From Basidiobolus meristosporus CBS 931.73 (Eukaryota; Fungi; Basidiobolomycota), in NCBI GenBank assembly GCA_002104905.1, contig MCFE01000427.1:1-64000 (forward strand): 64,000 bases of DNA, in the 5' to 3' direction. Below the pieces are notes generated by a model. The model worked only from the letters and a program-made list of their open reading frames with translations, made no database searches and was not told the DNA's origin. Positions 4,204-54,044 of this stretch are shown here, piece after piece. The first letter of the stretch is position 1. Each line of letters begins with the position of its first letter. The translations under genes were made by a program, and so were the position numbers.

Positions 4204-6144
4204 AAGAATAGAAGTTATAATAGTGCACTTTGTGATTCTTCTCCATATGAAGCATGGTATGGGCACAGATCAAGTGCTGAACAACTAAGAATATTTGGGT
4301 GTACTGCATATACCAAGGTACTGCCTGGAAATCAGTCAAAATTTCAGCCAAAAAGTGTAAAATGCGTATTTTTGGGTTACTGCAATGAGAGTAAAGCATA
4401 CAGACTCTACAATATCAAAGCAAAGAAGCTTATCAAGCCCAGGAATGTGTTGTTTGATGAAAATTCAAAACTTTCACAAAAAATTACATCAGATGATGAC
4501 AAAATCTGATCATAAGTCCACCAATTGTCAGGATTAAATTAGTGCAAAACAATGAAGATTTTCACTCCAGTGGACTCTACAACCATGGGTCAGTCTGAAG
4601 CAGTGCCCAGGAATATCCTAGAAGTGATTATTCCAGTATCAAATGCCTGGAGATTCTATCAGACAAGAAATAGCCAAGTCACTATATCAATGAGGGTACA
4701 AACTTAGCTTATGTGTATTCAGTCCATGTTGATGAGCCCCAGACTATAAAAGTGGCTCTAAATAGCCCTCAGACAGAGGTTTGGAGATCTGCAATGACTG
4801 AGGAATATCAGGCTCTGATGGAAAATCAAAATTGGGACTTAGCTAAGTGACTGATCAACCAAAAATCAATTGGATGCATATGGGTCTTGAAGACAAAATA
4901 CAAGGCTGAAAGCTCCATTGAAGGTTTCAAAGCAAGACTTGTGGCCAAAGGATAGTCTCAAGCAAAAGGTTGTGACTATACTGAGACCCTTGCACCGGAA
5001 GCTAAGTTTAATTCCATCATATTGATATTGGCTTTTGCAGCCAAATATAAATTCTTTATACATCAAATGGATTTAAAAATTGCTTTTTTGAATGGAGAAC
5101 TTGATGCGGACATGTATATGTACCAGCCTGACAGTTTTGCTGACAAAGGTCACCCCACTTGGTCTGCAAGCTTAAAAAATCTCTATTTGGTCTTAAACAA
5201 TTCCAAGAGCCTGGAATTGCAAAATAGATTCTTATATGGAATCTTTGAGTGTCAAAAGAGTAATGCTGACTATAGTATATACTATAAGCCAGATAGAGCA
5301 AATCCAGCTCTATTAGCTGTGTATGTGGATGATCTTATTATAGATGCCAACTGACCTAGCAACATTGGAAGAGAATAGATCCAGCCTATCTAAGTAGTTG
5401 AAGATGTCCAATCTAGGAGAAGTCAGTTACTACTTCAGGGATAAAGTTCTCCATAAACAGATGTATCCAGATTATGACCCTACGCCAATCCAAGTATATT
5501 CACAGATATACTAAAGAAGTACCAATGGAAAACTGCAAACTGGCAACTACCTCAATGAAGACAAACCTTAGCATGGTCAAAATGTAACAAAATAAGAGAG
5601 CTTGGTGCCATCTGAAAGCCCTGACTTTCCTTATCAATTGATGGTCAACAGTCTGATGTATAACATGCTGGGAACATGTCCAGATATCTCATACTCAGTG
5701 GGAGTTGTCAGCTGGCACAATCACAACTATGGTTCTGATCATATTGCAGCAGTTAAGTGGATTTTTTGATTCCTAAAAGGAGCTGCTAATATCTGCTTAA
5801 GATACACTAATAAAGGTTCAGAACAGGATCATGTGGGATACTCTGATGCTGATTGGGGACAAATTCTGGAAGACAGAAGATCCACCACAGGATACACCTT
5901 TCTTTACTGTAAAGGAGCAATTTCATGGAATTCAAGAAAGCAACCAATCATAGCAGATTCTACTGCAGAGGCAGAGTATATGGCAGCCTGTGAAGATACA
6001 AAAGAAGCAATGTGGTTAAGAAAGCTTTTTACAGATGTAGGCCTATATCAAAAAACACCTATTAAGTTATTTCAGGATTATCAAGGATATATACAGTTAG
6101 GTAGAAATCCTACTTTTCATGTTAGAACCAAGCACATAGATATT

Positions 6145-8489: not shown

Positions 8490-9506
8490 ATTAAGCATCA
8501 TTTCATAGGAGAAGCTATGGAGATTAACTTAGTTAGCTTAGTTTACTGTCATTCAGATGAAATGATTGCAGACATATTTACCAAACCATTAGCTAGAGAC
8601 AAGTTTGAACATCTTAGGTCAAAACTAAGACTAGTCAGTATGAACATTTAGCTGAGTAGGAGTGTTGAAAAAATTTGTAATTTCACTTAACTATCCACCC
8701 AACTTAGTCACTTGAGTAATATCCAATTCCTTGTGGGGATTTGGTTGGAATATTTTCACCAAAATATCAGGTACTCAGAACATAACAATTGGATAAGCTG
8801 TCCAAACAGCCCCATACTTTGCACACATGTTCATGTGTCTTTCCTTAGCCTATTCTATGTGTTTGTAATGCTAAGATCATATAAAAGTATAAATACTACT
8901 TTTCTATCCAATAAATCATTAAGCAAAAACCACATAATCTACTTGTTCACACAATCACTTGCAATTTGTCCAAAACTCTTACAACAATACAAGCATGTAC
9001 AGTCTGTTAAGGAAGGTCTCAAGAATGTGTGCTAAGTATGGGGTACTTTGAACATCCTTGAGCAAGGTCATAAGCTGGGTACCTGATAATTTGCTGAGAA
9101 TATTCTAAATTGATCCCAATAAGAAGTTTGGTTATCACAGAATATTAATCATGGAATAGGATATGTGGCTAAGCTAACATGAATATTTAGGTGTCAACTA
9201 AAGAATTACAACAATAAATACTATGAAAGCTTCCCAAAAGCCACCCAGCTTTGCACTCATGCTAATGATGCAGCAGCACTCTATAGAGTAGAGGAAATGG
9301 TTACGACAACTAGAAATCTGCATGATATTTGTTTTCTGTGTATCAAGTGTAAATAGAGTATTTATACTTCTAGTAGAACCCTGTAGAGCTACTGCCAATA
9401 TTTCTTAGAGCAGAAAGCAGCTCTTGGAGTAATTTGTCCAGCCAATATTATCCTCATTGCTAGGCATATCTTATTGCAACATTGGGTATGTGGAAAATGA
9501 ATATAT

Positions 9507-9857
9507 TGTTGAAATATTGGACTATTTGGTATCATTCAGCAGCTAAAAATTTACTTAACAATTCTAGGCTAGTCTTAGTTACTGTAGGACTCATTTACTG
9601 CCTTAACTTCGCCACTTTCTCCAGATATATGATCTTATGATTATTCCCCTATAGTCAGGATCAAATTAGCACTATTACCAAACATTATGTACTAACCCTG
9701 AAACTGTTACAGAATGCTCCTGAATATTGAGAAACCCTCCCTACTTAGTGTTGCAGCTGTATTACTTCTACAAAGGTATAAATACTGAGCTTCTTTATGA
9801 ATAAACAAAAGTTCAACTATTATCACTATTTCTTGATAAGTTCCTTATATCCAAATC
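9507..9857 (+). repeat. Degenerate solo LTR, family B
   Basis: Reverse-complement homolog of 14935-15284 (starts TGTTGAAATA). End approximate. Confidence 0.65.
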
Positions 9858-9929
9858 ACTTCTTAAATTGCAACATATATTAGTTTTGTACAAAGGCCCC
9901 TGACCTTTTCACACCTGCTTGTAAATGTT

Positions 9930-12087
9930 TCAAGAGACTTGGAAATATTGGAAGTGATTAGGACAACAAGTAGATAATGTGGTTTCCACTAAAAATTTTA
10001 TTGAATGTAAAAGTAGTGTTAATTCTTTTACATAGTATTGGCAGAGCAAACATACCAAATATGCTTAAGAAGGTCCCAAGAATATGTGTGCAAATCTTTG
10101 GGCTGTTTGGACAGCTTGGAATAATTTCATCAAGATAGCAGGTACCCAGAGCATGAAAATTCTCAAAATAAATCCAACAAAAAATTGGGTCTGTATTCTC
10201 CTAGATTTGTAGGTATGAATCTAAGTGACTAAGTTGGGTGAGTATTTGGTAGAGTTACATACTTTACATCAGTTTTCACTTAATGCTTGAATCAATGTGA
10301 AAATATTCCAAGTCCCAGCAAAATATATGGTCAGAACACTTCAAGATTTGCAGGTGATGCTCAAAGTGAGCGTTCAGTTATAATACAAGCTTTGCAACAT
10401 TCCTGCTCACATGAAAATTCATACTACCAAGTCCAAATTGTGAACTGATATATTCAAATTTGTCTACAGCTAATGGCTTTGTATATATGCCCACAATCAT
10501 TTTATCTGTAGGGCAGTAAGTTAAGTTAGCTGAGTTGTTCTCTATAAATTCCAGTATGAAATGATGTCTGGTATCTATGTTATCAGTTTTAGCATATACA
10601 AAAATTGCATTTCAAATGTTGAACCAAAAACATCAGCTGAATATCAGCAAAGTAACTTTAGAATACAAGCAGAGTACCAGCTGAAAGTTCAATGAATTCC
10701 ATGTTTGGGATTTTTCACAGTGATGTATCTGGTGGTGAATCTCCTGTCTTCTGAGTTTTTCCTCATTCTGCATCAGAGTATCTCAAAAGATCCTCTTGTG
10801 AATCCTTATTTGTGTACCTTAAACATATACTAGTAGCTCCCCTTGAGTATCTGGAAGTTTGCTTAACTGCTGCATTATAATCTGATCAAAATGGCTATGC
10901 CAAGAACATTGACATTTAGAGCAAATAGAACTGGACTTGATTTGTGTGGCTATAGTAGAAGCATTAGTAGGCAGTACTTCATTGGGAACTCAGGGACTCC
11001 AGATAAGAGTCAATCTTGTACATCCAGGCTCTAGGTGACTTACATGGACTGTATGAAGGTTTTTTAAGCTTGCAGCCCAAACAGGGATCATATTAGTCAG
11101 CAAACCCATTAGACTGGTCCAGGTGCATGTTGTCATCAAATTTATGTTTCAAAAAGGGTTCTTACATCAATTTGAAGAATAACAAACTTATACTTGGCTG
11201 TAACTGCAACTATTGATTTGATGGAATCACACCTAGGTACAAATGCAAAGGTTTCAGTGTAGTCCAGTGATTTTGTCTGAGAGTATCCTATGGCCACAAG
11301 TCTTGCCTTGTATGTTCCAGTTATACTATCAGCCTCATATGTTACACTGAAGACTCATCTGCATCCAACCAATTTTCAGAAAGTTGGTAATTTGGCCAAA
11401 TCTTGAGTTTGATTTTCCATTAGGGCTTGATATTTCTGAGTCATTGCAGAACTACATAGCATTCGTTGAGGGCTATATAGGGTATCTTTTACAATCTAGG
11501 GCTCATACCTCTGGAATGATCCTGGGAACTGATTCCAGCGGAACCACAAGTGCAGAGTATTTGGAGTGAGAAAGTTATTGATGTTTTGCTCTGAATGAGT
11601 TACAACTGCTGGTAGACTTGGAATTATGCTTTTGTGATGATCAGATGACTTATTTTGTCAGAATGATAAGTTTAATCAGTTAGCACATCCCTAGATCTGG
11701 TCAGCATCTTTGCTTTGGCATTTCAGAGTCTCTATGTCATACCCTCATTGCATTAACCCAAAAATATGTTCTCACCACCTTTTGGATCAAGTTGTGATTG
11801 ATTTCCAGGCAGTTTCTTAGCATATGCTGTGCTATCAATTAATTTTTTGGTGCTCTACACTTGGTCTATATTCATTCCATGCCTCCTACAGAATAGAAGC
11901 ATGAAGTATTTTGCAATTACCCCCAATTTAAAGATGTGCATCTGTAACAACTTATTGCACCCAAAAACCATACCCTATGAAAAGTAATTTGGTCTTGCAG
12001 GTGGATCCAGTCTAGATCAGGCTTCAGGATCCCACCAGGAGACTTTAACAATACCAGCAGCTTTGAATTCATGACTCTCTACATATT
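9930..12087 (-). mobile_element. Heavily decayed copia relic (LTR-like piece, RNase H, RT, integrase remnants)
   Basis: Minus strand retains KT.nIDTRHHF-like and RT-like stretches similar to family A, with no long ORF. Boundaries approximate. Confidence 0.6.
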
Positions 12088-14934: not shown

Positions 14935-16218
14935 TGTTAGATATAAGGAACCTATCAAGAAATAGTGATAAAGATTGAGATGTTGTTTATCAATAAAGAA
15001 GCTCAGTATTTATACCTTTGTGGAAGTAATACAGTTGTAACACTAAGTAAGGAGGGTTTCTTGATATTCAGGAGCATTCGGTAACAATTTCAGGGCTAGT
15101 ACATAGTTTCTACTAATAGTGCCCATTTGATCCTGACTATAGGGAAATAATAATAAGATCATAGATCTGAAGAAAGTGGCCAAGTTAGCGCTGTAAGTTA
15201 GTCCCACAGTGACCAAAACTAGTCCAAAATTGTTAAGTAGGTTTTTAGCTGCTGAATATTACCAAATTGTCCTATATTTCAACACTCCCCCTCAACTAAA
15301 TAATTTCTTAATCGTAATTCCTCCCTGAGATTCACAAATTGTGGCCTAGCTAGTGGTTTTGTCAATATATCTGCCACCATTCTGTTAGTTGGGAAGTACA
15401 CTAACTCTACTAAGCTGTTTTTTGCAGCTTTCCTCTCTGAGTGATGCTGTATATCAATGTGCTTAGTTCTGGCATGATTAGTATGATTTCTAGCTAATAA
15501 AATACAGCTTTGATCTTCTTTGTAAATACCTTTTGGCTCATCTGAATAAAAACCTAAGTCTTTGAATAGTTTTTGTTGCCATATAGCCTCCTTAGTTGCT
15601 TGACATGCAGCCATATATTCAGCTTCAGTTGTAGATAGGGCCACAGTTGGTTGTTTCTTGCAGTCTTAAGTAATAGCTGCACCAGCATAAAGAAAAACAT
15701 ATCCTGTGGTAGAGTGTCTGTCAATCAGATCCCTACCCCAATCTTAATCACTATAACCATCAAATTCTTGCCTATTAGCTTCTCAGGAGTATTCCAGTAC
15801 CATACTTATGGTACCTTGTAGATATCTGAAAATCTGCTTAACTGCTGCAATTTGATCTGGTCCATATTTCTGCATGAATTGACTGACTATTCCAACTGCC
15901 AATGCAGTATCTGGACAAGCAGACACCATCAGGTCCATTAGGTTGCCAACCATTGATTGATAGGGAAAGTTTAGGTCCATATTTGAGCTGTTCTCATCCA
16001 TAACTGGATGGGATTTGCCTGATTTCAGGTGATTGTCCTTAGTGATAGCTGCAGGCTTGCCATTTTCCATTTTGGAGAGTCTAAGAATGTCCCTCATGTA
16101 CTTGGACTGATTCAGCACAACTTTCTGCGTAGGTCTGTCAAATTTGACTTCAATTCCAAGAAAATAGCTCAATTTTCCAAGATCTTTGATGTCAAACTTG
16201 CTGAAGAGATCTGGTTGT
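14935..16218 (-). mobile_element. 3' fragment of a copia element of family B (RT end, RNase H, PPT, 350-bp LTR)
   Basis: ORFs 15783-16223 (DLGKLSYFLGIEV, YQSMVG) and 15279-15644 (ALSTTEAEY, KHIDIQHH). PPT GTTGAGGGGGAG adjoins LTR 14935-15284 (TG..CA). Confidence 0.85.
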
Positions 16219-16620
16219 GGCAATTTATATTTGGTATCAGTGAGATAATTTAATCAGGTGTAGTGAATGGCTGAACAAAATCTGGCCAATATCAAATTCA
16301 TTGTAGTGATTGTCATAGCCTAGTGGCAACTACCAAGCAGGGTACATGTCAGGTGCAGGGATCAATTCCTACCTGATGGCAAATGTGGGAAACTCTAAGT
16401 AGGGAGATTTCTCTTTTGTGAAAAATAGAATCCAATATTTGGCTGCATACCCACCAGTGACCCTACTTTTTAGCTGACCCTAAGCAGGGACTCTGCCCAA
16501 TATATTCTTTCCATGCAGCAAAATTGGGAGACTTACATTGTGTTTATTCAAAAGATTCTTAATAGGCCAAAACTCATGTACTGTTCAAAATGGAAGAACT
16601 TCTGCTTTGAAGACCAGAAG

Positions 16621-17001
16621 CTAGCAATAGTCACTATAGCAGTCATCATAATAGTCATCATCATAGCAGTCATCATAACTGTCATCATAGCAGTCATCAT
16701 CATAGTTATCATCACAGCAGTCATCATAGCAGTCATCATCACAGCAGTCATCATAGCAGTCATCATCACAACAGTCATCATAGTCATCATCACAGCAGCA
16801 ATCTTCATCATCCCAGTCATCATAGCAGTCATCATCACAATCATCACAGCAGTCATCATCATATCCATAAGAGTTGTACCACCTCTTCTGGAGAGCACTC
16901 CCTGTGGCAGCTACCTCACCCTGAGGTAAAGCTGAGCCATTCTTCAGAAGAAGCACACTGAGTATGACCACAAGGGAAGCTCTGCTTAGAAGGGATCTCA
17001 T
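16621..17001 (-). CDS. Secreted Asp/Cys/Tyr-rich prepropeptide, copy 1 (126 aa)
   Basis: ATG, signal peptide (MRSLLSRASLVVILSVLLLKNGSA), propeptide ending in a KR Kex2 site, 86-aa acidic repeat. Palindromic TATTTAAA box upstream at ~17137-17144. Confidence 0.7.
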   Translation of the reverse strand: MRSLLSRASLVVILSVLLLKNGSALPQGEVAATGSALQKRWYNSYGYDDDCCDDCDDDCYDDWDDEDCCCDDDYDDCCDDDCYDDCCDDDCYDDCCDDNYDDDCYDDSYDDCYDDDYYDDCYSDYC

Positions 17002-17703
17002 AGTGATGGGAGGTGCTCAGCAAGTGGCAGGAGAGAAAGGGTTGTGTATCAGGAAGAGCAGAGAGCCTGGCAGCTGTTGCTATGAGAGGGAGAAGAGAAG
17101 CCTGGGAAGATAAGTGGGAGTAGCCTGTGCCAACTCTATTTAAATGCTCTCTTGATAAGGCCAAGGGAAGGTCAGTGAAACAAGGTCAGTGTGATCAGTG
17201 ACTGCAATGCAACTGATGGATATAATCCAAGTGAGCATCTGCATTTAGCACACACCCTGCTGCCATCACTATTACCCAGACAGTGTAGGTCAAGGATTAG
17301 GCAATTTATATTTGGTATCAGTGAGATAATTTAATCAGGTGTAGTGAATGGCTGAACAAAATCTGGCCAATATCAAATTCATTGTAGTGATTGTCATAGC
17401 CTAGTGGCAACTACCAAGCAGGGTACATGTCAGGTGCAGGGATCAATTCCTACCTGATGGCAAATGTGGGAAACTCTAAGTAGGGAGATTTCTCTTTTGT
17501 GAAAAATAGAATCCAATATTTGGCTGCATACCCACCAGTGACCCTACTTTTTAGCTGACCCTAAGCAGGGACTCTGCCCAATATATATTCTTTCCATGCA
17601 GCAAAATTGGGAGACTTACATTGTGTTTATTCAAAAGATTCTTAATAGGCCAAAACTCATGTACTGTTCAAAATGGAAGAACTTCTGCTTTGAAGACCAG
17701 AAG

Positions 17704-18084
17704 CTAGCAATAGTCACTATAGCAGTCATCATAATAGTCATCATCATAGCAGTCATCATAACTGTCATCATAGCAGTCATCATCATAGTTATCATCACAG
17801 CAGTCATCATAGCAGTCATCATCACAGCAGTCATCATAGCAGTCATCATCACAACAGTCATCATAGTCATCATCACAGCAGCAATCTTCATCATCCCAGT
17901 CATCATAGCAGTCATCATCACAATCATCACAGCAGTCATCATCATATCCATAAGAGTTGTACCACCTCTTCTGGAGAGCACTCCCTGTGGCAGCTACCTC
18001 ACCCTGAGGTAAAGCTGAGCCATTCTTCAGAAGAAGCACACTGAGTATGACCACAAGGGAAGCTCTGCTTAGAAGGGATCTCAT
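17704..18084 (-). CDS. Secreted Asp/Cys/Tyr-rich prepropeptide, copy 2 (126 aa)
   Basis: Identical to copy 1. Confidence 0.7.
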   Translation of the reverse strand: MRSLLSRASLVVILSVLLLKNGSALPQGEVAATGSALQKRWYNSYGYDDDCCDDCDDDCYDDWDDEDCCCDDDYDDCCDDDCYDDCCDDDCYDDCCDDNYDDDCYDDSYDDCYDDDYYDDCYSDYC

Positions 18085-18815
18085 AGTGATGGGAGGTGCT
18101 CAGCAAGTGGCAGGAGAGAAAGGGTTGTGTATCAGGAAGAGCAGAGAGCCTGGCAGCTGTTGCTATGAGAGGGAGAAGAGAAGCCTGGGAAGATAAGTGG
18201 GAGTAGCCTGTGCCAACTCTATTTAAATGCTCTCTTGATAAGGCCAAGGGAAGGTCAGTGAAACAAGGTCAGTGTGATCAGTGACTGCAATGCAACTGAT
18301 GGATATAATCCAAGTGAGCATCTGCATTTAGCACACACCCTGCTGCCATCACTATTACCCAGACAGTGTAGGTCAAGGATTAGGCAATTTATATTTGGTA
18401 TCAGTGAGATAATTTAATCAGGTGTAGTGAATGGCTGAACAAAATCTGGCCAATATCAAATTCATTGTAGTGATTGTCATAGCCTAGTGGCAACTACCAA
18501 GCAGGGTACATGTCAGGTGCAGGGATCAATTCCTACCTGATGGCAAATGTGGGAAACTCTAAGTAGGGAGATTTCTCTTTTGTGAAAAATAGAATCCAAT
18601 ATTTGGCTGCATACCCACCAGACCCTACTAGCTGACCCTAGACTAGACCCTACTTTTTAGCTGACCCTAAGCAGGGACTTACTGACCCTACACTATATAT
18701 TCTTTCCATGCAGCAAAATTGGGAGACTTACATTGTGTTTATTCAAAAGATTCTTAATAGGCCAAAACTCATGTACTGTTCAAAATGGAAGAACTTCTGC
18801 TTTGAAGACCAGAAG

Positions 18816-19196
18816 CTAGCAATAGTCACTATAGCAGTCATCATAATAGTCATCATCATAGCAGTCATCATAACTGTCATCATAGCAGTCATCATCATAG
18901 TTATCATCACAGCAGTCATCATAGCAGTCATCATCACAGCAGTCATCATAGCAGTCATCATCACAACAGTCATCATAGTCATCATCACAGCAGCAATCTT
19001 CATCATCCCAGTCATCATAGCAGTCATCATCACAATCATCACAGCAGTCATCATCATATCCATAAGAGTTGTACCACCTCTTCTGGAGAGCACTCCCTGT
19101 GGCAGCTACCTCACCCTGAGGTAAAGCTGAGCCATTCTTCAGAAGAAGCACACTGAGTATGACTACAAGAGAAGCTCTGCTTAGAAGGGATCTCAT
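18816..19196 (-). CDS. Secreted Asp/Cys/Tyr-rich prepropeptide, copy 3 (126 aa)
   Basis: Same protein, with two synonymous changes in the signal peptide. Upstream region is deleted and diverged and lacks the TATTTAAA box. Confidence 0.65.
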   Translation of the reverse strand: MRSLLSRASLVVILSVLLLKNGSALPQGEVAATGSALQKRWYNSYGYDDDCCDDCDDDCYDDWDDEDCCCDDDYDDCCDDDCYDDCCDDDCYDDCCDDNYDDDCYDDSYDDCYDDDYYDDCYSDYC

Positions 19197-19559
19197 AGTG
19201 GGAGCAGCTTGTCTCACCTCCTCTTGAATGCTCTCTTGAGAGAGGTACAGTAGGTTTATCAGCATGAGAAGCAGGAACTTCAGCTGGTTGAATGTGTCTT
19301 TGATTTTCTTGTAATACTGCAGTATTGGTCTTTTTCATACTGATAAGTTTTTATAAGGCTTTGCTCTGCATGTCACAACTTTTGCATCCTCACATGCTCT
19401 GGCATTCTCTATCTCTGTTGTTGAATGAGATTCAAGTGGTAGCTTACACAATTTTATATCTCATTGCACAGTTAAAGTAAAGTGTGCTGTATGCTGTTGT
19501 CAACATTTGGTCTTCTGGATCTCATAAAAAATCATTGCTCATGTATCCTAAACCATCCA

Positions 19560-22290
19560 GCTTTAGAAACTTACTAGTGTACTTCAAGCAGACATCAGCA
19601 GTTTCTCTTAATTTACATCATATATTCCTAATTATTGCCCTACAATTAGATCCAATGGTCCAACTATGAATGCTGACCACTCTGAATAAATTAGAAATAT
19701 TTGCACATGCTTATTGCATGAATGCATCCAACTGCCAATCACAGATTGGTCAGGGGGGTATGGACATTCTGGTGGGCCAAACGTTTCTTGGCTTGGGTGA
19801 TCTATGACCAATTTGAGGCTTGCCTCCATTGGTGTAGCTGCTGGCATTCTGCAGTTCATTTGGTGCTTCTTAGCTTTATATGCTGGATATCCCTAGCTTG
19901 ACTTAGGGAGGTAGTCTGGGCGCTTCTGTCTCAGATGAGCTGCATCCCTAGCTAGTAACTGTGCACTCCTAAGTTGAACATTTAAAACTCCTGATGAAGG
20001 CTGGAACTATTCTCCTCCAATACCTCTTTGATATTGGTAGCTATAATAAGATTATCCATATATGAAGCTAATAGTGCTGGATGTGCTCCATCTGGCTTAT
20101 ATTAAGCACTATTGTTAGTGGTACTTCTTTGGAAACTCTCAGATTCCAATCAATATGGCAATTACAGGCTCTTGGTAATAGTTTCAGTCTGAATGGAGTT
20201 TTTTTAAGTGTTCAGACTAAATGGGGCTTATTTTGGGCAATAAACCAGTCAGGTAGGTCAATATACAAGTCCTCATAAAGGTTCCCACTTATTATGGTGC
20301 TTTTACATCCATTTGCAGAATAAGAAGCCTGTGCTTTGTTGCAATAGTTAATTTTGGTCTGATTAATTTAGCTTGGCTGTCAGTGCAAAGGTCTCAGTGC
20401 AGTCCAGTCCTGTTAGTTCAAAGTATATATTAGCCATGAATCCCACCTTGTATATATCAGCTGTATCACAGGCCTCATGTTTGTCTTGGAGACTCACTTA
20501 CATCCAATTGATTTTGGTTGATTGGAAACTTACCTAAGTTCCTAGTTGATTTTCCATTAGGGGCTGGTATTCTTGCTTGTTAGAGATCTCCAGAAGCTGG
20601 TCCACATGGTCATTAGGGGTCTCCTTCACAGTCTGGAGCATGTTAATATGGACAGACTAGGGATAGATTTAATTTAGACCCTCATTGATACATGGAATGT
20701 GCTATTTCTAAGCCTGTTGGATCTCTGGCCTTGTGATACTGCATTTCTTACTTCTAGGACATTTGGGGCTCCAATTCAGGCAGAATTGTGATAGTAGATT
20801 CATCTGAAGTGAAAAAGCTCTTCATTTTTTGCTCCAACTCACACCTATCAACTGTTGTACCAGAGATTGTATTATGGCCATTAACTGATCTTTTGTGTGA
20901 GAATCTTGAATATTCATAAGCCACACATCCATGTGTCTGATCAGCTTCCTTGCTTTGGTACTGTGGAGTCTGTAGGTGTTACTCTCATTGCAGTAACCCC
21001 AAGATTGATAACTGACCACTTTTGGCTAGATCCTGACTGATTTTGGGAAAGTACTTGGCATATGCTGTGCAACCAAACATTTGTAGATGCTTCAACACCT
21101 AATTTATATCCTATGCCACTCCTCAAATGGAGTAGAATCACCAACACCTCTTCAATAACTTCTATTTTTAAGATATATATCTGTAGCAAGTAAAGCCACT
21201 CAATAGCAAAGGATAACTTTAATTCTTTTTCTTATTGAAGCCCAGCTCTGATTGGCATGCTTTCCAATTGCTAAAGCTACAAAAGAGGTTGTTGTTGCCT
21301 CTGAGGGACTTTGAGTACCTTTCTTGGTGCTCTCATGGCTTATTAAAGCTCCTGCTTTTGCCTTTTTATCAGCACTTGATTCTCTGAATTCCAAATCTTT
21401 AGTTACATTGCCTATGACATATACAAGGCCCTGATGTGTGTGTCAGGCTATTCAGGGGCTAATCATTGCATATCCCTCAGTAGCTTTCTATGCCCACCAA
21501 CTTAATCTCATCAACAAACGAGGAAGATTAATTAATTAGTATTTTCATTACTTCTTGTGGCAGCTGTAGTTCTGAAAAGGGAATTCTTGCCTAAGAAACA
21601 TGTCTCTTAGCAGCTAAACGTGATTGAGCAGTGTCTGTAAATGCCTTCTAGGCATTCCTTGCCACTTTTGCTCTTCAGTATTGAATTAGCAATCTGTCTT
21701 TGACACTGAAGCAAATGCTGGTAAAGGCAATTTGTTCTTTTGGCTGATAGTCTGAAGCTTCTTCTCCAACAACTTTAAGAGGGCATTTGCATTCTATAAT
21801 AATATCTCAAAAGCCATTTTCCTATTGCAGCATCTACTTCTTCAACATCTGTACTTTGTGGCTAGATCCATCCAACTTTTTGGCAGAGGGAGAAATCCCA
21901 GTATTAGCAGTATTGGACATTCCTTAGAGTATCAACTTGGGACTTGAAGCCTATTGTAATGGTTGTGGAGATATTGGAAGTGAATGGGAGAACATGTAGA
22001 TTATATGATTATCACTCAGTGATTTATTGAATGTAAAGGTAGTATTTACACTTTAGTATGATATTGGCACCACAAGCAAGTATAATAGGCTTACAAAGGC
22101 CCTAAGAGCATGTGTGCAGGTCTTGGTACTTATTATACAACTCTGAGAAATATGATGTTTGCAGTACCCAATGTTTGGTGAAATATTCCAAGTGATCTCC
22201 ACATGGAATTTAGTCAGAACTCTCTAATATTTGTAGATAAGAACCCAAGTGACAACACTAGGTGAATGTCCAGGTGTAACTACAATATTT
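19560..22290 (-). mobile_element. Degenerate copia-A relic (gag, integrase, RT remnants plus LTR-like end)
   Basis: Minus strand has GYCNESNTYRLHSTKARKLI (20822-21019), matching the family A integrase C-terminus, plus RT remnants. Boundaries approximate. Confidence 0.7.
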
Positions 22291-22673
22291 ACAACAACAC
22301 ACCCAATACCATTTGCTGGAGACAAATTAGCTTATCTCAGATCACAATTATTACTTGTTTGTACAAGTATTAAATTGAGTGAGAGTGTGGTAAATTTTGC
22401 AATTACACCCCAGTACCCCTCCAGCAAAGTTGTTTATATCATGGTTACAAATTTTAGAGAACTCAGACCAAATTCCTTGTTAGAATCAACTTGGAGTATT
22501 TACCAAACATCAGGTACCCCAAAAATGAAATTTTGCAAAGTTGTCCAATCTGCCCCAAACTTGACACACATGCTCTTTGGATCTTTCTGAGCTGATTGTG
22601 CATACTATATTTGCCAAGACTGTGTAGAGCTCTATATACCACTTTTACATTCAATATATCATCAAGTGAAAAC

Positions 22674-23005
22674 TGTTGTAAAAATTTGTATTTCCACCTA
22701 AATATTCACCTAACTTAGTCACTTAGATCATCACCTTCAAATCCTAGAGAATACTGACCAAATTCCTTGTCGGGAATTACTTAGAATATTTGCCCAGAAC
22801 ATGAAAATTAGATAAGTTGTCCAAACAGCCCCAAACTTTGCACACATGTTCTTGGGACCTTCCTTAACCTATTCTACGTGTTTGTAATGCTAAGACCAGG
22901 TAAAAGTATAAATTCTACTTTTACATTCAATAAATCATTAAGTGAAAACCACATAATCTACTTGTTCTCCCAATCACTTCCAATATCTCCAAGACTCTTA
23001 CAACA
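22674..23005 (+). mobile_element. Young solo LTR, family A short subtype (332 bp), inserted in an older LTR-A
   Basis: TGTTGTA…TTACAACA with a perfect 5-bp TSD AAAAC (22669-22673 / 23006-23010). Near-identical to 49734-50065. Confidence 0.95.
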
Positions 23006-24964
23006 AAAACCACACAATCTACTTATTCTCCTAATCACTTCCAATATTTCCAAGACTCCTACAAAACATCATAGCCTAGTGACAATTACCAAACAGGGTA
23101 TACCAGGCACAGAGACTGGCTCCTATCTGATTGCAAGAATAGGAAACTCCAAGCAGTGAGATGTTGTTTGTAGAAAAAAGTATCCTATATTTTGCTGCAT
23201 ATGCACCTATGTCCTGAGTCTTTGGCTGATCCTAGGCAGAGAATTTACACCCAACATCACTACTGTGGCTTACTTGGATAGCTTCTGTTAACTTGTGTTA
23301 AGTGCTCTGTTGTCTCCCATGCAAATCTTCATTTGTATCCTTAGATAATGGGTATAAAGTTCGTTTAAGTGTGGCAAATGTTGAGATGCTCCAGAATCAA
23401 TAAGCCACATCTGAAAATCTTTGTTTGCTGCTGCACTTATCACAGATATGAGTAGTTAGTACTCAGTGGCTGTGGTGTTTTCAAGTTTATATATTTTGGG
23501 TTCATATCTCTTGTTGAGGAGCACCAGTCCTATGAGTATCCTTTCCTTTTTCAGTATTTACAACATACAGTGTTTCTTTCTTTATAGGGTTGTGCACATG
23601 ACTTTGGATGGCCAATATTGCTTAATAAAGCAACTTATACTTCCTTTAGATTGGGATTTGATTTGCTTAGTTTAGTGCACAAGTGTCTGTACACATAAAT
23701 AATCCAAAGTCAAGTCCTCAGTTCTGGACTCTAGGGTGGACACAAGATCCTGAGATCAGTCTGTTAGGGTACTTAGGATGGTAACTATAACATGTTCATC
23801 AGTGGTTAGCACTTCAATTGTTTATATCACATCTACTAACTGGACAATTCAGATAATTATGTTTTTCATCTCTTTTCCCAGAGTTTGCATATTTTTATTG
23901 AGTCCCAAATGCTGATTGGATGTACTGGTAAATATTGTGAAAATGAGATGTCCGGTCTGCCAAACGATCATATAAAACATCATCAGATTTTTTGGTGGCC
24001 TATATTAATGAATATCAGAGGGCATTGAAAACGATTTGGAGACCTGGTACATATGCATGAAAATCTGTTGCTGCTCTACTGTGTCCCGACAGAGTAGATG
24101 TACTTTCTGGATAGCCTCAGGGAACCGATCTCCATATTGTATTTAGAAAGGTTCCAGCAGATGACACACCGTTTTTGGGGCGACATGGGGGAAAATCTTG
24201 AAGTTTGGACAACTTCGAAGATATCATAAGTACAGTGAACTAGCTAGTATGTTACAAACCGGATCTCGAGGCAACCGATGATTTCGAGGCGTGAGGTGGT
24301 TGACACATTTGATGATCAACCTAAGTGATCTAGGCAACTTACTGATACTAGGCAGGCGGGTTTTTCTGGTGCCACTTCCTAGGTGGCAAAGCCGAATCAA
24401 CTCTGGGATGTCCATGGAAACATAGGCAGAGCACCTCATCCCAACAGAACACTTGATGCCATGGATCGTTTGATACAAGGGAACTGCCGCTATCGCGACG
24501 CTCATCACCCAAATCAAGATAATGCATGCATGGTTTCATTCAAAGCAAGGCGGGAAGTTCAAGTGGCATGCAACGATTCCGGAATGCGCGGATTGGTCGG
24601 TCATGGCATGACTCATTTGGAGGGAAATCGCATCAGTGCCGTGGATGTTGATGGCTTACTTGAAGCAGGCACATGGGCGTTCCTAAGCCACCTGTGTTTC
24701 GTTGGGTCAGCGTGTTTCATCAGTACAAAGAATAGGAATGGGAATGGAATGGCAATGGAGAAGGAATCGGGACAATTAATCCATGGTAAAGTGCAGGATG
24801 AGGGGTCACAAAAAAGGCTAGTTCTTGTTTGGGCCGCCATCTAAGACCAATGGTCCATGGTCATGGTAACCGCAACCACAGGCGGGTTATATAGGTGCTC
24901 ACGGCGGACGGGATTGGTTGTACTGATATCTCGCTGGAGAGGACACTTCCCGCCGCCTTCTGCG

Positions 24965-25971
24965 ATGAACTTTGGTGAACACCCAGCGGAGTCCCTTGAG
25001 GGGGACCCTTCGTTGTCGACCAACCCCGGACATTTCTTTGACCTCCGCGCGGAGAGCCTGGTGGACATGCCGTTTCACTGGAAGCAGTACTTCGAGGAGC
25101 TACAGAATGCGATGCTGTCCCAGATAACGCTGAACTTTCGAAGCTTGCACGAACGTCTCGATGGAGTAGAGGAGAAGCTGGAGTACGTGCTGCGGACGAG
25201 CGCCGGGAATTACTGGAACGCCAAGGTGTCCGGGATCGAGGCGACCCTGGACAGCCTGACCAACACCACTCCGAAGCCCCCTCACCTTTCACGAAACGAC
25301 CACTTACCGGTTGAGGGCACCCCGGGTAGGCAGCATATACCCGACAGCTCGACCACCCCTCGCCCCAACCCGAACAGTATAAGCAACGCACTTTCCCCAA
25401 CCACCCCAGGTACCGAGAGGTTTCTGTTCCAGGTAAGAAGCCCGAGTGTTGGCCAGTACAACTAACTAGACCTTTGACGGCAGTGTCCCAGCTACCCTCG
25501 GAAGAAAGTGCCAAGGTGAAGGTGCTGCTGAGGCAGTTCGCAGCCGGTGCCATGAACTACATCGACAAGAACGCCACCACCTTTCTCAATGTGAACAACC
25601 ACGCGGGAGGTAAGGCTCTGTGCGCAGTGTAGCCCGTCAGCAGGTCGACGAGGTTCTAACCCCCCCCCCCCTTTGCGTTCTGCGACACGCCAGCCATCTC
25701 CACGATGAAACGATTCGGGCTCTACGAGTCCCCGGCGTGGGACAATTTCACTCAGCTCCACTTCCCCCACGTGCTGAAACGGGACCTGACGGACGAATTG
25801 GTGAAGATAATCACGGTCAAGGTGAAGAACACCAAGGCCAGATACAAAAAAGTAAGGGATCGCGGTTTGGTTTGTCTCGCCCACGGTCCCACTAACCCCC
25901 GACCTCCTCCTCGCATTTAGAAACACTCCACCTCGCAGTCGACCGAACCCAACTCTGGCCTCGATGGCTGA
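24965..25971 (+). CDS. Hypothetical 4-exon protein (259 aa): coiled coil, Pro/Ser/Thr linker, basic helical C-terminal domain
   Basis: Exons 24965-25409, 25484-25609, 25694-25851, 25921-25971 join in frame (780 bp). Introns are GT..AG with (A)CTAAC branch points; TATA-like TTATATA ~75 bp upstream. First donor (25410) chosen because it preserves frame. Confidence 0.75.
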
Positions 25972-26341
25972 GCCTCCGCCTCGGGCAGGAGATCGATTTT
26001 TGTCCAGGATTTTGATATATCTCATTCACCACTTGTATTTTCCCTCGGCCATCTTTGCAGTCAGGCCAAACATATGTAAATGTCCCCGAATGTTGATGAG
26101 TTGCCACTACCACGGAAGGTACATACTGTAATCAATGTAAAGCTCGTCCACAACCCCTCCTCCCTCCTCCCTCCCTCCCCCCGACCACTTTTCCTTCACC
26201 AACACCTTGCCCAGATAAATGTTCGCCGAACCGGAAATGCGAGGGAAGTGCACCTCGCTGACCCGAGAAAACCGATGACTGCTCTAAGGAGAAATGTTTA
26301 TTTGCTGTTTGATGCCAGTTTGGTAAAGATGAGGGGTGAGT

Positions 26342-26756
26342 TTAGAGGGAGCCTTGCATGTTCTGGGACTCGCGTTGGACGCGAGTGATGTAGGCACGGG
26401 AGACGGTGTTCCAGGCCTCCATGTAGCGGTCCATGCACTTGGAGATGCAACCTTGCTCACCGCTGTCGAGACGGGAGCCGGGCTTGGGCACGCACTTGGC
26501 GAAGCATTTGTCGTTCATTTTCTGAAGGGAGAGAGAGTGAAGTGAGTTTGGGGGTTCCGAAGGTAAGGGCTCAACAGCGGGGACCCGATGAACCGAGTCC
26601 CCACACTCTCCTCGGCCCATTTGAAGAAAGACCACTTACGTTGATGAGCTCCTGGGCGTTGGCAAGGGCCAACTCGCTTCTGACTTGGTCCATGACCTGT
26701 TGCTTCTTTCCAGCACCGCTGGAGGGGATGGAGAAATCACTGGCGTATTCACTCAT
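26342..26756 (-). CDS. TIM13: Mitochondrial small Tim chaperone Tim13 (98 aa, 1 intron)
   Basis: Exons 26756-26640 and 26521-26342 give …[12 protein letters not shown]|[10 protein letters not shown]…[20 protein letters not shown], with the twin CX3C motif. Intron GTAAGT..TTCAG. Confidence 0.95.
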
Positions 26757-27239
26757 GGTGTAGGTGTGGTGGTGGAGGTGGTGGTGGTAGTGGAAGTGGA
26801 CACGGACGTCGACGAACTAGGTAAACTTGTAGGTGGTCAGTTTCCTCGAGCTTATTATTCAAAATTTCCTCGTCCCCCCCCCGTTTCCGCTCCCTCCGAT
26901 CGTACCCTCTTTCCCATTTTTTCCAAAGCGAAAATTTTTCCTGCTCCGCCATCTCGCCGATTTCCTCCACTTACGGCGTTCGATTTCGTCCTCTCACCCC
27001 CCCCCACTCCACCGGGGTGGGGGAATCGGAGGTGAGAGTTGGACCAGGGGTGAGAATGTGACAGGGGGAGGGGATGCTATGACGTCAATTCGGAGAGGGC
27101 GCTGACGATGAGGTATGGGCCGCCCGTTTCAGAATGGCCACCTATGATACCATGGCCTGGTGAGCCAAATAAATTCATCTCAGGTGGGATATCTCCAAGG
27201 CGATGTATAAAAGCCAAGGCGGACCTACGGATGCCACCA

Positions 27240-27798
27240 ATGAAGTGTGTAAACCTCTACAGAATCACCATCCTACTGTTCGCACTGTGCGCGGTCTCCT
27301 GCGTGGATCGGGAGGTATCATGGTCGGCCCCTTGCCTCACCCAGTCCCCTGCTAACCCATCTCGAATCACCCTCTAGATTGTCCGTATCACCAGTCCCAA
27401 AGCTGGGGCCACGCTGAAGTTCGGCCAACCGATCGATGTCACCTGGGAGTTGCCGCAGGACCTTGGTTTCATGAATTTCACCGCGGAGCTCTGGTCCCTG
27501 AACACCATCCAGGCTGGGAGCTCCAGGAAAATCGCCACCATCGGACACACAGACTCCTCCAAAGCCCAAAGACAACGGTTCAAGATCCGATGGAATGTCC
27601 CCACCTTCACCACCGAGATGAAGACGGGGTATTTCATCGCGGTGTACGGGAACGTGTTAAAGTAAGTCCCCCCTCCGGAACGAGCTATCCCTGATGAGAG
27701 ACTAACGAACAAGTGGACATAGCAAAGGGCCGGTCTTCTCGTGGGTCTATCCCTGGGACAACGTCTACTACGGGTTGGTCAACGTTCGCTTCGCCTGA
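27240..27798 (+). CDS. Small secreted protein (147 aa) with a Kre9/Knh1-like N-terminal Ig-like domain
   Basis: Exons 27240-27314, 27378-27661, 27714-27798 in frame (444 bp). Signal peptide, then ITSPKAGATLKFGQPIDVTW…RWNVP. TATAAAA at 27206-27212. Confidence 0.8.
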
Positions 27799-28486
27799 GT
27801 GCTCGGATGAAAACCTCGTGTCACCAAGAATACCGCCAGAATAAACAAACCTTGCTTCGTTTGAAACAACCAGGGACTTAAGTGATTTATAGGAATAGCA
27901 TGCAACTTGCCATGTTGTCACCATGGGCATGCGGGTGGCGAGGGGGGGGGGTATCCTAGCATTCTTCCAAGGCCCCCGTCCCTTGATGCGTATGATCTAA
28001 CTTGGCTGTAAATGAATCCGATGAGGGTTAGAGTGAGTGATTTGTGCCCAACACCAAATTAATGAGCAACTGGAGTGGTACCTGATCCATCCAGATCGCG
28101 CTACATGGATACTGGTGCTGGATGATGTTGACCAGGATCCAGTCATTGCCTGGCAATTGTGGGTGGGATATATCCGCGATCCAAAGATGCAGTGCACCCG
28201 AAGGTGCCATGCGTACATGTGTCTTCATGCAAGCAGCCATCAGGAGTTTCGGGTTTAGGAGATGCTGTTCTGCAGGTATTCCAATTGCCAGGGATAACTT
28301 CCGTAAGGCGTATCCATGTAATGGAGGGCCAATAATCCGAGCTTCACGGTGAGCGGCTACAGCACTATTTAAGTGCACCAGAGGCCACACTGGATGTCCA
28401 AGCAAGTATCATCCTCATCTCTAGTAGCCAGCACCAAGCACCGCTTTCACCAAGCATATAGATCTTCTTTCCCTCCACCATCAATC

Positions 28487-29038
28487 ATGCGTTTCTTCTC
28501 AGTCAGCCTTGCCTTGGTCGCTTTGACCTCCCTCCTCCTGACCAGCGCCAATGCTGCGTCATTTGAGAAACGCCACGGAAACGAGAAACACGTGGCCTCT
28601 GCGCTTGAGAAACGTCACGGTAACGAGAAACATGTGGATGCTGTACTTGAGAAGCGTCATGGTAACGAGAAACACATCGCGGCGGTTCTTGAGAAACGCC
28701 ATGGCAACGAGAAACATGTGGATGCTGTACTTGAGAAGCGTCACGGCAACGAGAAACACATCGCCGAGCTTGAGAAGCGCCACGGAAATGAGAAACACGT
28801 AGTAGAGCTCGAGAAGCGCCACGGCAACGAGAAGCATATCGCCGAGCTCGAGAAGCGTCATGGTAACGAGAAACACGTCGCGGCGGTCCTCGAGAAGCGT
28901 CATGGCAACGAGAAGCACGTGGTAGGCCTCGAGAAACGTCACGGTAACGAGAAGCACATTGCTGAACTCGAGAAACGCCATGGCAAGGAGAAGCACGTGG
29001 CCAGCGTGGAGAAGCGACACGGTAATGAGAAACATTAG
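28487..29038 (+). CDS. KEX2-processed repeat protein (KEP, 183 aa) with 12 HG(N/K)EKH cores
   Basis: Signal peptide MRFFSVSLALVALTSLLLTSANA, then repeats KR-HGNEKH-(4-5 aa)-EKR. Synonymous codon variation among repeats with a conserved core. Confidence 0.93.
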   Translation: MRFFSVSLALVALTSLLLTSANAASFEKRHGNEKHVASALEKRHGNEKHVDAVLEKRHGNEKHIAAVLEKRHGNEKHVDAVLEKRHGNEKHIAELEKRHGNEKHVVELEKRHGNEKHIAELEKRHGNEKHVAAVLEKRHGNEKHVVGLEKRHGNEKHIAELEKRHGKEKHVASVEKRHGNEKH

Positions 29039-29401
29039 AGGGCCGCAACCACTAGACCCACACCCAAAGAACCCTCATTTATCACCAGATCCCCCGTATC
29101 TCACTGGCCTGTATACAGCCATACGGCGAAACCAATAATTATCAAGCAACACCCGAATTAACCCAGAATTCACTATTTGCCCAATAAATTACCCGCTGTT
29201 TATTTCGATCTTGGGTGTGTGCTCGAGTTGATCTGGAACGGTATTTCGGGCTCCAGTCCTTTCATCAACCGGAGCCACTAGTGAGTATCATGATAAGGGG
29301 TGGGGTGAGGTGAGGTGAGGTGGGATGGGTAAAGGAGTAGGAAACAATGTGGCAGGGACAGCAGACTACCTGCCCTGCCTGCGTTCCTCTTCTCTCCCCT
29401 C

Positions 29402-29800
29402 CTAGAGAACTTTTTTGCTCACGAATTGGCCACCGGTAGTCCCCTCACGCACGAAGGTGGGGTCGTTCTTGGCCAACCAATTCTCCAGCAGGGCCAGGTT
29501 GTAGATGTTGGCCTTGAACAGGACATCCAAGAAGTCCCCGACGAAAGGGACCAGTCCGATCACGGCGTCCACGACGACGTTCAACACCATCAGCCCGATC
29601 AGGGTGACCGGGATGCCGAGCTGGGCGGACATGTAGATCTGGTACAGCGAGATGAGCAAACCGGCAATGTCACCTATCCCGGGGATCAGCCCAATCAGAG
29701 GGTCAAGGCCGATACCAAAGGGCACACCGGGGATCGCATCCATGTAGGAGGCGAAACGGCGGATGTTGTTGAGCAAACGCTGCTTTTCACTGGAGTTCAT
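29402..29800 (-). CDS. DUF4112 domain membrane protein (132 aa)
   Basis: MDAIPGVPFGIGLDPLIGLIPGIGD and IGLVPFVGDFLDVLFKANIYNLALLE are typical DUF4112 motifs. Confidence 0.88.
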   Translation of the reverse strand: MNSSEKQRLLNNIRRFASYMDAIPGVPFGIGLDPLIGLIPGIGDIAGLLISLYQIYMSAQLGIPVTLIGLMVLNVVVDAVIGLVPFVGDFLDVLFKANIYNLALLENWLAKNDPTFVREGTTGGQFVSKKVL

Positions 29801-30420
29801 GGAGATGCACAGTGGTGAAGGTCAAGGTGAAGGCGAAGGCGAGGTGGATGGACTTGAACAAGAACCGTAATCCCCAGGATGAATTAGGTCACTACTAGCA
29901 TGACTGTCTTCAGGGATGGATTGGTTCGGGTTCGCAGTTAAGCTTCATCCAATCGATGTGGAGAATACCTGACTGGTCTATGGATCAGGATTGGCTACGG
30001 AAATATCCCATAGATCTCGCTTCGGGTTGCCACCTCTGAAAGACGTAACAAGATAACAGGATCCGCAGAGATAAATGTAGGTGGTGAGCATCTCACATAC
30101 TGATGCCAACTCACCTCGCAACGACAGGGCCAGCGAAACGGCTCTTATCTATCAAGCTGATTCGCCATAGAAAGGAAGGTGAGGCTCAAACGCACGTGCT
30201 ACTCCAAATCAATGGCCACTATATTTGGCACAACCGATATGGGACCACAATACTGGCTGGCAGCATCTTTCCGAAACCGTCGATGCCTATTTTATCAGGC
30301 CACGGGTAAAATCTCATTCGAGTCATCCTTGCTCAGGAGGTCCGAGATCCTTTATAAGCGTAGATCAGGGCCTTGCCAACTACTTTTCCACTTCTCCACC
30401 CCCACCCCCCCCCCGCAAAA

Positions 30421-31897
30421 ATGGTTCTTGAGAGCAATCCCGTCAAGTTAGAGAAGGTCCCTGACGCCAATGGGTTCTTCGGACCGTTCGGCGGCTCTTT
30501 CATTCCGCCGGAGCTCCAGAAACAAATGGACGACATTAATTTCGGGTATACTCGACTTAGCAAGTCCCACGATTTCATCCAAGGTGAGTGCTAGACGCAG
30601 CCCCGGTCGCATTTTCGGTCGGCTGACGTTGTTTCGGTTGATGTAGAACTACGCAGGATCCGCAAGCACTTCCAAGGTCGCCCGACCCCTGTCTATTACT
30701 GCAAAAACCTCAGTGAGAAGATTGGCGGCGGCCGAATCTATCTGAAGCGAGAGGATCTGAATCACACCGGCGCCCACAAGTTGAACCATTGCATGGGAGA
30801 AGCCCTGGTGGCGAAATACCTGGGCAAGAAAAAGCTGATCGCCGAGACCGGAGCGGTGGGTAGATCCTCGTCACCTGCGCCACCCCTTTGTTCATCCCGC
30901 TAACCATCATCCTCTGCAGGGGCAGCATGGCGTCGCTTTAGCCACGGCAGCGGCCTACTTCGGCCTCGAGTGTGAGATCCACATGGGAGAGGTGGATATT
31001 GCCAAGGAGCATCCGAATGTCACCAGAATGAAGATCTTGGGCGCCAAGGTCGTCCCGGCCACCCACGGACTAAAAACGCTCAAGGAGGCGGTGGATTCCG
31101 CATTCGAGGCGTATCTCAAAGATCCAATCGACTCCATCTACTGCATCGGCAGTGTGGTAGGCCCACACCCATTCCCCAAAATGGTGCGCGAGTTTCAGCA
31201 TGTGGTGGGCCTGGAGGCACGTGAGCAATATCTGGAGATGACTGGTGAGTGGCGGTTATGCACTGAGTCCAGGATGCAATCTTGACTGACTGTGGTGTTC
31301 AATTAGGGGATCTTCCTGACCATGTTGTCGCATGTGTGGGTGGTGGCTCAAATGCCATTGGAATGTTCACTGCTTTCCTTGAGGATAGCGAAGTTCAGCT
31401 GCACGGAGTGGAGCCAATGGGCAAAGGAACCAAACTTGGTGAACACGCAGCCTCGTTGAGCTATGGCGAGGAAGGAATCATGCACGGTTTCAACTCGATC
31501 ATGCTGAAGGATGAAGCCGGTGAGCCCGCCCCGGTCTACTCTATCGCTTCTGGCTTGGACTATCCCAGCGTAGGTCCAGAGCATGCTTACCTCAACTCCG
31601 TGGGCAGAACCCAAGTTGGTACGGCTAACGACGAGGAGACGCTGCATGCGTTTTTCCAGCTTTCACGACGGGAAGGTAAGGTGGTGGAGTAGCTGAGTTG
31701 CCGGTTGTATGCTAACCGATAGCGTTCTAGGAATCATCCCAGCTCTAGAGTCGGCTCATGCTGTGGCATATGCCATCAAGCTCGCCCGAGAAAACCCCAA
31801 TGCCAGCATCTTGGTAAATCTCAGTGGACGTGGTGACAAAGATATAGATTTCGTCATGGAGAAATATGGGGAGTATGCTGACCGCGACGACTATTGA
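30421..31897 (+). CDS. trpB: Stand-alone tryptophan synthase beta subunit (410 aa, 4 introns)
   Basis: Exons 30421-30583, 30647-30855, 30920-31244, 31307-31675, 31731-31897 (1233 bp). [14 protein letters not shown] (PLP lysine), [50 protein letters not shown]. No alpha domain. Confidence 0.96.
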
Positions 31898-50065: not shown

Positions 50066-50077
50066 GGTTATGAGCCC
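50066..50077 (+). promoter_or_regulatory. Primer-binding site GGTTATGAGCCC (copia half-tRNA-iMet type)
   Basis: Directly abuts the 5' LTR, resembles the Drosophila copia GGTTATGGGCCC PBS, and contains the gag ATG. Confidence 0.75.
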
Positions 50078-54042: not shown

Positions 54043-54044
54043 CT

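Follow-up and report, generated by a model that had tools for sequence, protein, structure and literature searches.

A triplicated gene for a predicted secreted Asp/Cys/Tyr peptide in CpG-depleted transposon debris of Basidiobolus meristosporus

Three nearly identical reading frames lying among broken transposons raise the question of whether they encode a peptide that the fungus makes and secretes and, if so, what such a peptide might do. They are found in the window analysed here, namely positions 1-64,000 of contig MCFE01000427.1 (77,097 bp; assembly GCA_002104905.1) of Basidiobolus meristosporus CBS 931.73. All three are intronless open reading frames (ORFs) on the minus strand, each 381 nt long (126 codons and a stop), and they translate into one identical 126-aa protein. 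Our reading of the sequence, to which we assign a probability of somewhat under one half (about 0.45), is that they are copies of a recently triplicated, lineage-specific gene of B. meristosporus, whose product is predicted to be a secreted polyanionic peptide that is probably cation-binding and cross-linked by disulfides.

The anatomy of the protein is consistent with a secreted precursor. The first 24 residues carry two Arg residues, a 12-residue hydrophobic core and the sequence N-G-S-A, which places small residues at -3 and -1; the hydropathy reaches its peak of 3.5 in residues 10-19. A short pro-segment leads to Lys-Arg (residues 39-40) with Leu at P4, which is the sole basic pair of the protein and has the form of a kexin-type site, as proteases of this type prefer an aliphatic residue at P4 together with Lys-Arg. 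Since there is a single such site, one 86-residue product is expected. The original prediction had proposed a signal peptide, propeptide and Lys-Arg site followed by an 86-aa product with 43 Asp, 19 Cys and 15 Tyr; inspection and hydropathy support this layout with both cleavages as probable events, and the counts are reproduced exactly from the translation.

The composition of the tail is extreme. Besides 43 Asp (50%), 19 Cys (22%) and 15 Tyr (17%), its 86 residues comprise only three Ser, two Trp, two Asn, one Gly and one Glu, so that Tyr and Trp together make up 20%. Lys, Arg, His, aliphatic residues and a hydrophobic core are all missing, and the net charge is about -44. Cutting after every Tyr divides the tail into blocks such as DDCCDDDCY (twice), DDDCY, DDCY (twice) and DDDY; there are CC and CCC runs, and Cys immediately precedes 8 of the 15 Tyr residues. 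Tandem Repeats Finder reports periods of 12, 27 and 39 nt, each divisible by three, and the 12-nt consensus unit is GAT GAC TGC TAT, encoding DDCY. The sequence is contained in the ESM Atlas, where its model is disordered (predicted local distance difference test score, pLDDT, 0.39; predicted template modelling score, pTM, 0.10).

Because the tail can be read without a stop in four of its six frames, openness by itself proves nothing, and the coding frame has to be identified by other means. Only the Asp/Cys/Tyr frame runs on into a complex, signal-peptide-like N-terminus, and its ATG is in good context with a purine at -3. All the T/C variation among the repeat units falls at third codon positions in this frame, whereas it would exchange Met/Thr, Ile/Val or Ala/Thr if one of the other frames were read. 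The TATA-like and poly(A)-like signals match the minus strand, and a Pfam search with both alternative ORFs of the repeat gave no match.

Comparison of the copies is also consistent with a maintained protein, although the numbers are small. Read on the minus strand, a full unit of the array consists of an upstream spacer, the coding sequence (CDS) and a 3' flank of 402-404 nt. Over the entire unit, the sole difference between copies 1 and 2 is one 2-nt indel. The CDS of copy 3 differs from that of copies 1 and 2 by two substitutions and no indel; codons 9 and 11 are each changed at the third base, in both cases synonymously. The earlier statements that the three copies encode an identical protein, and that the only two CDS differences are synonymous ones in copy 3, thus agree with our translations and CDS comparison. 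As only about 16% of all possible single-base changes in the CDS, and 33% of the transitions, are synonymous, two out of two is suggestive of selection (p of about 0.03-0.1) and not proof of it.

Outside the CDS, the 3' flank of copy 3 shows one substitution and five gap events, including additional units of a TAGGGTCAGC-like minisatellite (18600-18690) that are present in this copy only, which shows that such units drift where coding constraint is absent. The Asp/Cys/Tyr tail does not vary in length among the three copies, although its repeat is prone to slippage, while the 3'-flank minisatellite has changed in copy 3. On the upstream side, strong homology of copy 3 ends 4 nt before the ATG; beyond this point only about 45 nt align, at about 80%, and a 111-nt stretch upstream of copies 1 and 2 is missing. 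An origin of this upstream region from a long terminal repeat was considered and rejected, because it has no match elsewhere in the window.

The surroundings of the array bear directly on how it should be read. Positions 1-24000 are copia debris, and the array is bordered by a truncated fragment on the left and a degenerate element on the right. With the intact element at 49869-53651 as the reference, copia polyprotein fragments map to 1-5904, 8793-11978, 15690-16253 and 19480-23878, that is, to both sides of the array, which bears out the description of the gene as an island inside a transposon graveyard. The array (16219-19200) contains no CpG against about 135 expected, and TG and CA are elevated wherever CpG is lost in the window. 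The gene locus underwent the same C-to-T process as the surrounding transposons, which the original prediction had overlooked. Since the CpG-free sequence is common to all three copies, the erasure is older than the last duplications; by inspection, the two differences of copy 3 do not lie at former CpG sites.

The codons of the tail may carry a trace of this process. Asp is encoded by GAT in all 28 cases before a codon starting with G and by GAC in all 15 cases before any other base, and the Cys and Tyr codons of the tail obey the same rule before G. Over the whole CDS, pyrimidine-ending codons end in T whenever G follows (49 of 49) and mostly in C when it does not (38 of 54). If the ancestor preferred C-ending codons, some 30-40 CpGs were lost at codon boundaries. 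Such a CpG can become TG, with a silent T at the third position, or CA, with A opening the next codon and Asp turned into Asn or a similar replacement, and a symmetric neutral process would yield the two at about 1:1. The codon boundaries of the tail show 43 of the silent kind versus 2 of the other. With C-ending codons in the ancestor, all CpG losses of the tail would have taken the silent route. In the non-coding flanks of the same units, on the same strand, TG and CA are symmetric (31/33 and 25/29, with observed/expected ratios (o/e) of 1.34/1.34 and 1.56/1.48). A binomial test of 2 versus 44 gives p = 3e-11, provided that the events are independent. This asymmetry reads as purifying selection on the peptide during CpG erasure. 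Two explanations suggest themselves, namely preservation of the protein or growth of the tail from a 12-nt seed already free of CpG.

Searches for relatives were blank throughout. The 126-aa protein matched no Pfam family at E values up to 1, and a PDB sequence search returned chance matches only (E of 0.3 or worse). A word-index search of 5.8 billion proteins yielded 546 candidates for the whole protein and one for residues 1-47, none of which scored. With phmmer, no match was obtained among 1.84 billion cluster representatives, a library that lacks the query itself, so that paralogues from the same genome may be missed. At that database size, control runs scored strongly (4e-69 for the full protein, 1e-19 for the prepro part alone and 6e-12 for a shuffled tail of the same composition), and the blank is therefore not due to the composition filters of HMMER. 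The protein was absent from the collection used for an exact-sequence cluster look-up, none of 598 pattern matches in the JGI metagenomes was confirmed, and the ESM Atlas gave no usable neighbour, its structural neighbours having template modelling (TM) scores of at most 0.38. The initial impression that no fungal family has such a composition holds across Pfam, PDB, the large protein searches and the JGI metagenomes. On the basis of its sequence, we regard the protein as an orphan that belongs to the broad group of small secreted prepro-peptides in which B. meristosporus abounds.

Several known systems resemble the protein in part. Similar in organisation are the Kex2-processed secreted precursors (KEPs), of which CBS 931.73 has 43 predicted members, the most among 1461 fungal strains, many of them in two or three gene copies (PMC7329392). 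Like them, the Asp/Cys/Tyr protein is a small precursor with a signal peptide (by inspection and hydropathy), a Lys-Arg site and locally duplicated genes. KEPs, however, consist of many KR-flanked repeats that release short peptides, whereas here there is one KR and no series of repeats bounded by KR, RR or KK. Precursors of the dikaritin/ustiloxin type, in which KR-bounded repeated core peptides accompany DUF3328/UstYa oxidase genes, do not fit either, given the single KR and neighbours that are copia fragments; DUF3328 was not found among the large ORFs of the window, a scan that did not extend to small or spliced neighbours.

In composition, the acidic biomineral proteins of the Aspein/Asprich type, such as molluscan Aspein, are comparable, as they combine a signal peptide with an Asp-dominated disordered domain and an expected high capacity for Ca2+ (bioRxiv 10.64898/2026.06.03.729799), but they lack the 22% Cys and 17% Tyr and have no sequence relationship to our protein. 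Predicted secretion and a disordered domain with at least 50% Asp (43 of 86 residues, pLDDT 0.39) are shared with Asp-rich matrix proteins, and composition is all that is common, as no search revealed sequence homology. To our knowledge, no mineralised structure is known in Basidiobolus.

Metallothioneins, phytochelatins and (Glu-Cys)n peptides share dense Cys residues in CC, CxxC and CxxxC arrangements amid acidic residues, which suit Cu, Zn and Cd (PMC9917255, PMC4292183). They are nevertheless reduced, reside in the cytosol or vacuole and have nearly no aromatic residues, whereas the Asp/Cys/Tyr protein is predicted to be routed to the oxidising secretory pathway. Its signal-peptide-like N-terminus, its content of Tyr and Trp, the lack of a Pfam profile match and a Cys content of 22% versus about 30% all separate it from the metallothioneins. 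The Asp-only anionic antimicrobial peptides of ovine lung surfactant likewise have Asp runs, and their activity needs bridging by Zn(II) (PMC8267837), but they have 7 residues and contain no Cys or Tyr. The contig that carries the Asp/Cys/Tyr gene also carries other small secreted Cys-rich genes and a putative lysozyme gene.

If the gene is expressed, the following course of events can be proposed. The tail would have originated by in-frame expansion of the 12-nt DDCY unit, and the repeat domain presumably lost its CpGs by deamination associated with 5-methylcytosine or resembling repeat-induced point mutation. The gene may be silent in standard growth and switched on conditionally, a behaviour known from effector genes that reside in the repeat-rich compartments of other fungal genomes. 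The signal peptide would direct the protein into the secretory pathway and be removed after residue 24, a kexin-type protease would cut after KR, and the mature product would be released as a disordered polyanion of some 10 kDa with a charge of about -44. Its 19 cysteines would mostly be oxidised to disulfides within or between chains, knotting or linking them, and the odd count would leave one free. Outside the cell, it could bind multivalent cations (Ca2+, Zn2+, Cu or Cd) or cationic proteins and peptides, with the dense carboxylates as ligands, aided by thiols or thiolates and phenols.

Precedents for this chemistry exist, since Asp-only peptides bind Zn(II) and Cu(II) (PMC8267837), peptides in which acidic residues and Cys alternate, namely phytochelatins and (Glu-Cys)n, bind Cd, Cu and Zn (PMC9917255, PMC4292183), and Asp-rich disordered proteins bind Ca2+ in biominerals (bioRxiv 10.64898/2026.06.03.729799). 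From such analogies, cation binding outside the cell appears to be the most likely mechanism. A more specific proposal is that the protein represents a Basidiobolus-specific family of secreted hyper-acidic Cys/Tyr peptides that act as an extracellular high-capacity chelator or cation trap, with a sequence held by selection through a CpG-directed genome defence. We put this forward as a speculation that we consider unlikely. Such a chelator would in effect do outside the cell, as a product of the ribosome, what phytochelatin or poly-Asp does.

A number of considerations weigh against the proposed secreted, cation-binding peptide. The proposed function is argued from composition and established chemistry, and the roles suggested in the original prediction (metal binding, mineral nucleation, or a cross-linked coat or adhesive) are likewise candidates drawn from composition. 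Secreted cysteines are normally oxidised, which weakens the case for metal binding of the thiol type. Among six Entomophthoromycotina, S8B kexins were reported only in Conidiobolus incongruus and none for B. meristosporus (PMC6169396), so that processing at KR is a matter of inference. Several internal units of the tail are identical in DNA, and the CpG-loss events are thus not independent; moreover, the same codon pattern would arise without selection if the tail slipped from a CpG-free 12-nt seed. Finally, the array is CpG-free like the dead transposons and unlike the other secreted-protein genes on the contig, implying that the locus was treated as a repeat and may be silenced. The array could thus be methylated as well as silent.

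The last point leads to the strongest alternative, which we consider less likely than the main reading. According to it, the array is a satellite-like 1.08-kb tandem repeat in methylated heterochromatin, and the ORF is a by-product of a stop-free minisatellite built from GAT, GAC, TGC and TAT, an ab initio gene call that is never expressed. The absence of CpG, as in the adjacent copia debris, is what such a repeat would show; with four of the six tail frames open, openness alone says little; relatives were found in none of the searched collections; and the three copies are too similar for selection to be measured. Against this, the ORF runs on for 40 codons past the minisatellite into complex sequence resembling a textbook signal peptide followed by an L-x-K-R site, and an AATAAA and a TATA-like box are suitably placed. 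The tail is also free of indels among the copies while the flank minisatellite varies, and only in the Asp/Cys/Tyr frame is all T/C variation confined to third positions.

A second alternative accepts the peptide and changes its role, from a chelator to a structural cross-linker of the spore or zygospore wall or a conidial adhesive, joined through disulfides and through dityrosine or Cys-Tyr links made by peroxidase or tyrosinase. The 22% Cys with CC and CCC runs and an odd Cys count, the 17% Tyr, and the frequent placement of Cys before Tyr (8 of 15) would suit such a role, and processed wall proteins rich in Tyr occur in coccidian oocysts (PMC4776368). Among the structural neighbours of the Atlas model, a high-sulfur keratin-associated protein comes closest, but a TM score of 0.38 makes this similarity meaningless. 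We regard the cross-linker as improbable, because Asp does not make up 50% of the cross-linked wall and adhesive proteins known so far, the charge of -44 would work against self-association unless cations bridge the chains, and the C-terminus has no wall-anchoring signal.

It is also conceivable, though still less probable, that the cysteines are secondary, and that an Asp/Arg/Tyr precursor with acidic Tyr blocks split by Arg or Arg-Arg was recoded from CGY to TGY by CpG deamination. CpG erasure at the locus is total; GAT GAC TGC TAT is precisely the product of coding-strand C-to-T changes in GAC GAC CGC TAC, and the CC pairs would then mark former dibasic sites. Deamination on the other strand, however, gives CAY (His), yet CAN codons are absent from the tail, compared with 21 TGN codons. 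At the codon boundaries, at most 2 candidate C|A junctions that would lose Asp stand against 43 of the silent T|G type, whereas the flanks show TG and CA raised equally. This imbalance in the tail next to symmetric flanks makes a neutral recoding of Arg to Cys unlikely, although a single recoding of a short seed, followed by amplification, could account for the pattern. The notion that the true coding sequence is a plus-strand ORF of 138 codons (16513-16929, with its copies), which is also open, begins with ATG and would encode an Ile/Val/Ala/Thr-rich hydrophobic protein, can be set aside as very improbable, since its Pfam search is blank, the repeat variation falls entirely at first codon positions in its frame (Ile/Val and Ala/Thr swaps), and both the public annotation and the TATA-like and poly(A)-like signals lie on the minus strand.

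Should the secreted Asp/Cys/Tyr peptide be made, its composition would be without a counterpart found among billions of predicted proteins, and it would represent a new chemical type of fungal secreted product. As a 10-kDa polyanion built from three metal-ligand residues, it might be of use as a metal binder, and it could give a clue to how a gut- and soil-dwelling fungus deals with cations or cationic host defences. The locus also constitutes a natural test of a CpG-erasing genome defence acting on a duplicated gene, in which all CpG is gone and the protein is untouched. If the gene is never expressed, it would instead caution that stop-free minisatellites beside a chance signal peptide get annotated as genes.

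Table 1. Positions of the features at the Asp/Cys/Tyr locus and CpG levels (o/e) in three parts of the window
Feature	Positions	Strand	Remarks
Gene copy 1	16621-17001	-	ORF without intron; annotated gene in NCBI record
Gene copy 2	17704-18084	-	CDS identical to copy 1; annotated gene in NCBI record
Gene copy 3	18816-19196	-	Two synonymous differences; upstream region unlike copies 1 and 2; annotated gene in NCBI record
Tandem array	16219-19200	-	2.75 units of about 1082 bp each, from self-comparison of the window
Signal-peptide-like segment, residues 1-24	16930-17001 (copy 1)	-	From inspection and hydropathy; putative cleavage site
Pro-segment, residues 25-40	16882-16929 (copy 1)	-	16 residues ending L-Q-K-R; putative cleavage
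Asp/Cys/Tyr tail, residues 41-126	16624-16881 (copy 1)	-	In-frame imperfect minisatellite
Upstream spacer, 298 nt	17002-17299 (copy 1); identical at 18085-18382 (copy 2)	-	From sequence comparison; putative promoter
TATA-like ATTTAAATA	17137-17145 (copy 1)	-	About 140 nt upstream of ATG; in copies 1 and 2; putative role
AATAAA	16543-16548 (copy 1)	-	73 nt past the stop; same position in copies 2 and 3; putative poly(A) signal
Repeat of about 180 nt within the 3' flank of each unit	16313-16490; further copies 17394-17571, 18477-18683		
Truncated copia reverse-transcriptase fragment	15690-16253	-	Adjoins the left end of the array
Degenerate copia element	19480-22142	-	Right of the array
CpG o/e, copia debris	1-24000		0.06 (52 CpG)
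CpG o/e, gene block	24001-32000		0.81
CpG o/e, secreted-protein genes	35-48 kb		0.5-1.0

Two elements within the array bear a superficial resemblance to non-coding RNA. The repeat of about 180 nt in the 3' flanks has a copy of 73-74% identity at 23069-23242; an origin from a tRNA or short interspersed nuclear element was rejected, as the repeat is tRNA-like by eye in part but is called by neither ARAGORN nor Rfam. Matches of 19-23 bits to sR5, an archaeal C/D-box snoRNA of Rfam, at 16627-16838 and in the copies were also rejected, the cut-off being 40; they arise because the words TGATGA and CTGA in the Asp-codon repeat mimic C and D boxes.

On a larger scale, CpG in the window falls into two states. 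The transposon blocks 1-24000, 32001-35000, 49001-55000 and 58001-61000 have an o/e of 0-0.25 with raised TG and CA, and the gene blocks have an o/e of 0.6-1.0 and a higher GC content (52% at 24-32 kb), with abrupt borders of less than 1 kb. The copia-type element on the plus strand at 49869-53651 is apparently intact, with a 1260-codon polyprotein containing gag, integrase and reverse-transcriptase domains, and is already CpG-poor (o/e 0.13-0.25). Its first 330 nt or so recur in inverted and direct copies of 97.6% and 93% identity at 54054-55020.

Among the other genes, two identical 93-codon ORFs on the minus strand (36901-37182 and 38981-39262) encode small Cys-rich proteins with hydrophobic N-termini, and a related, truncated-looking copy lies at 34607-34912. 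These ORFs flank an intronless 163-codon ORF for a putative GH24 lysozyme (36027-36518), and the whole block retains CpG (o/e 0.5-0.7), unlike the Asp/Cys/Tyr array. A long open frame on the minus strand at 56389-57582, lying between CpG-poor repeat blocks, gives a full-length match to the mainly bacterial family of Porphyromonas-type peptidyl-arginine deiminases (PF04371, E = 1e-106).

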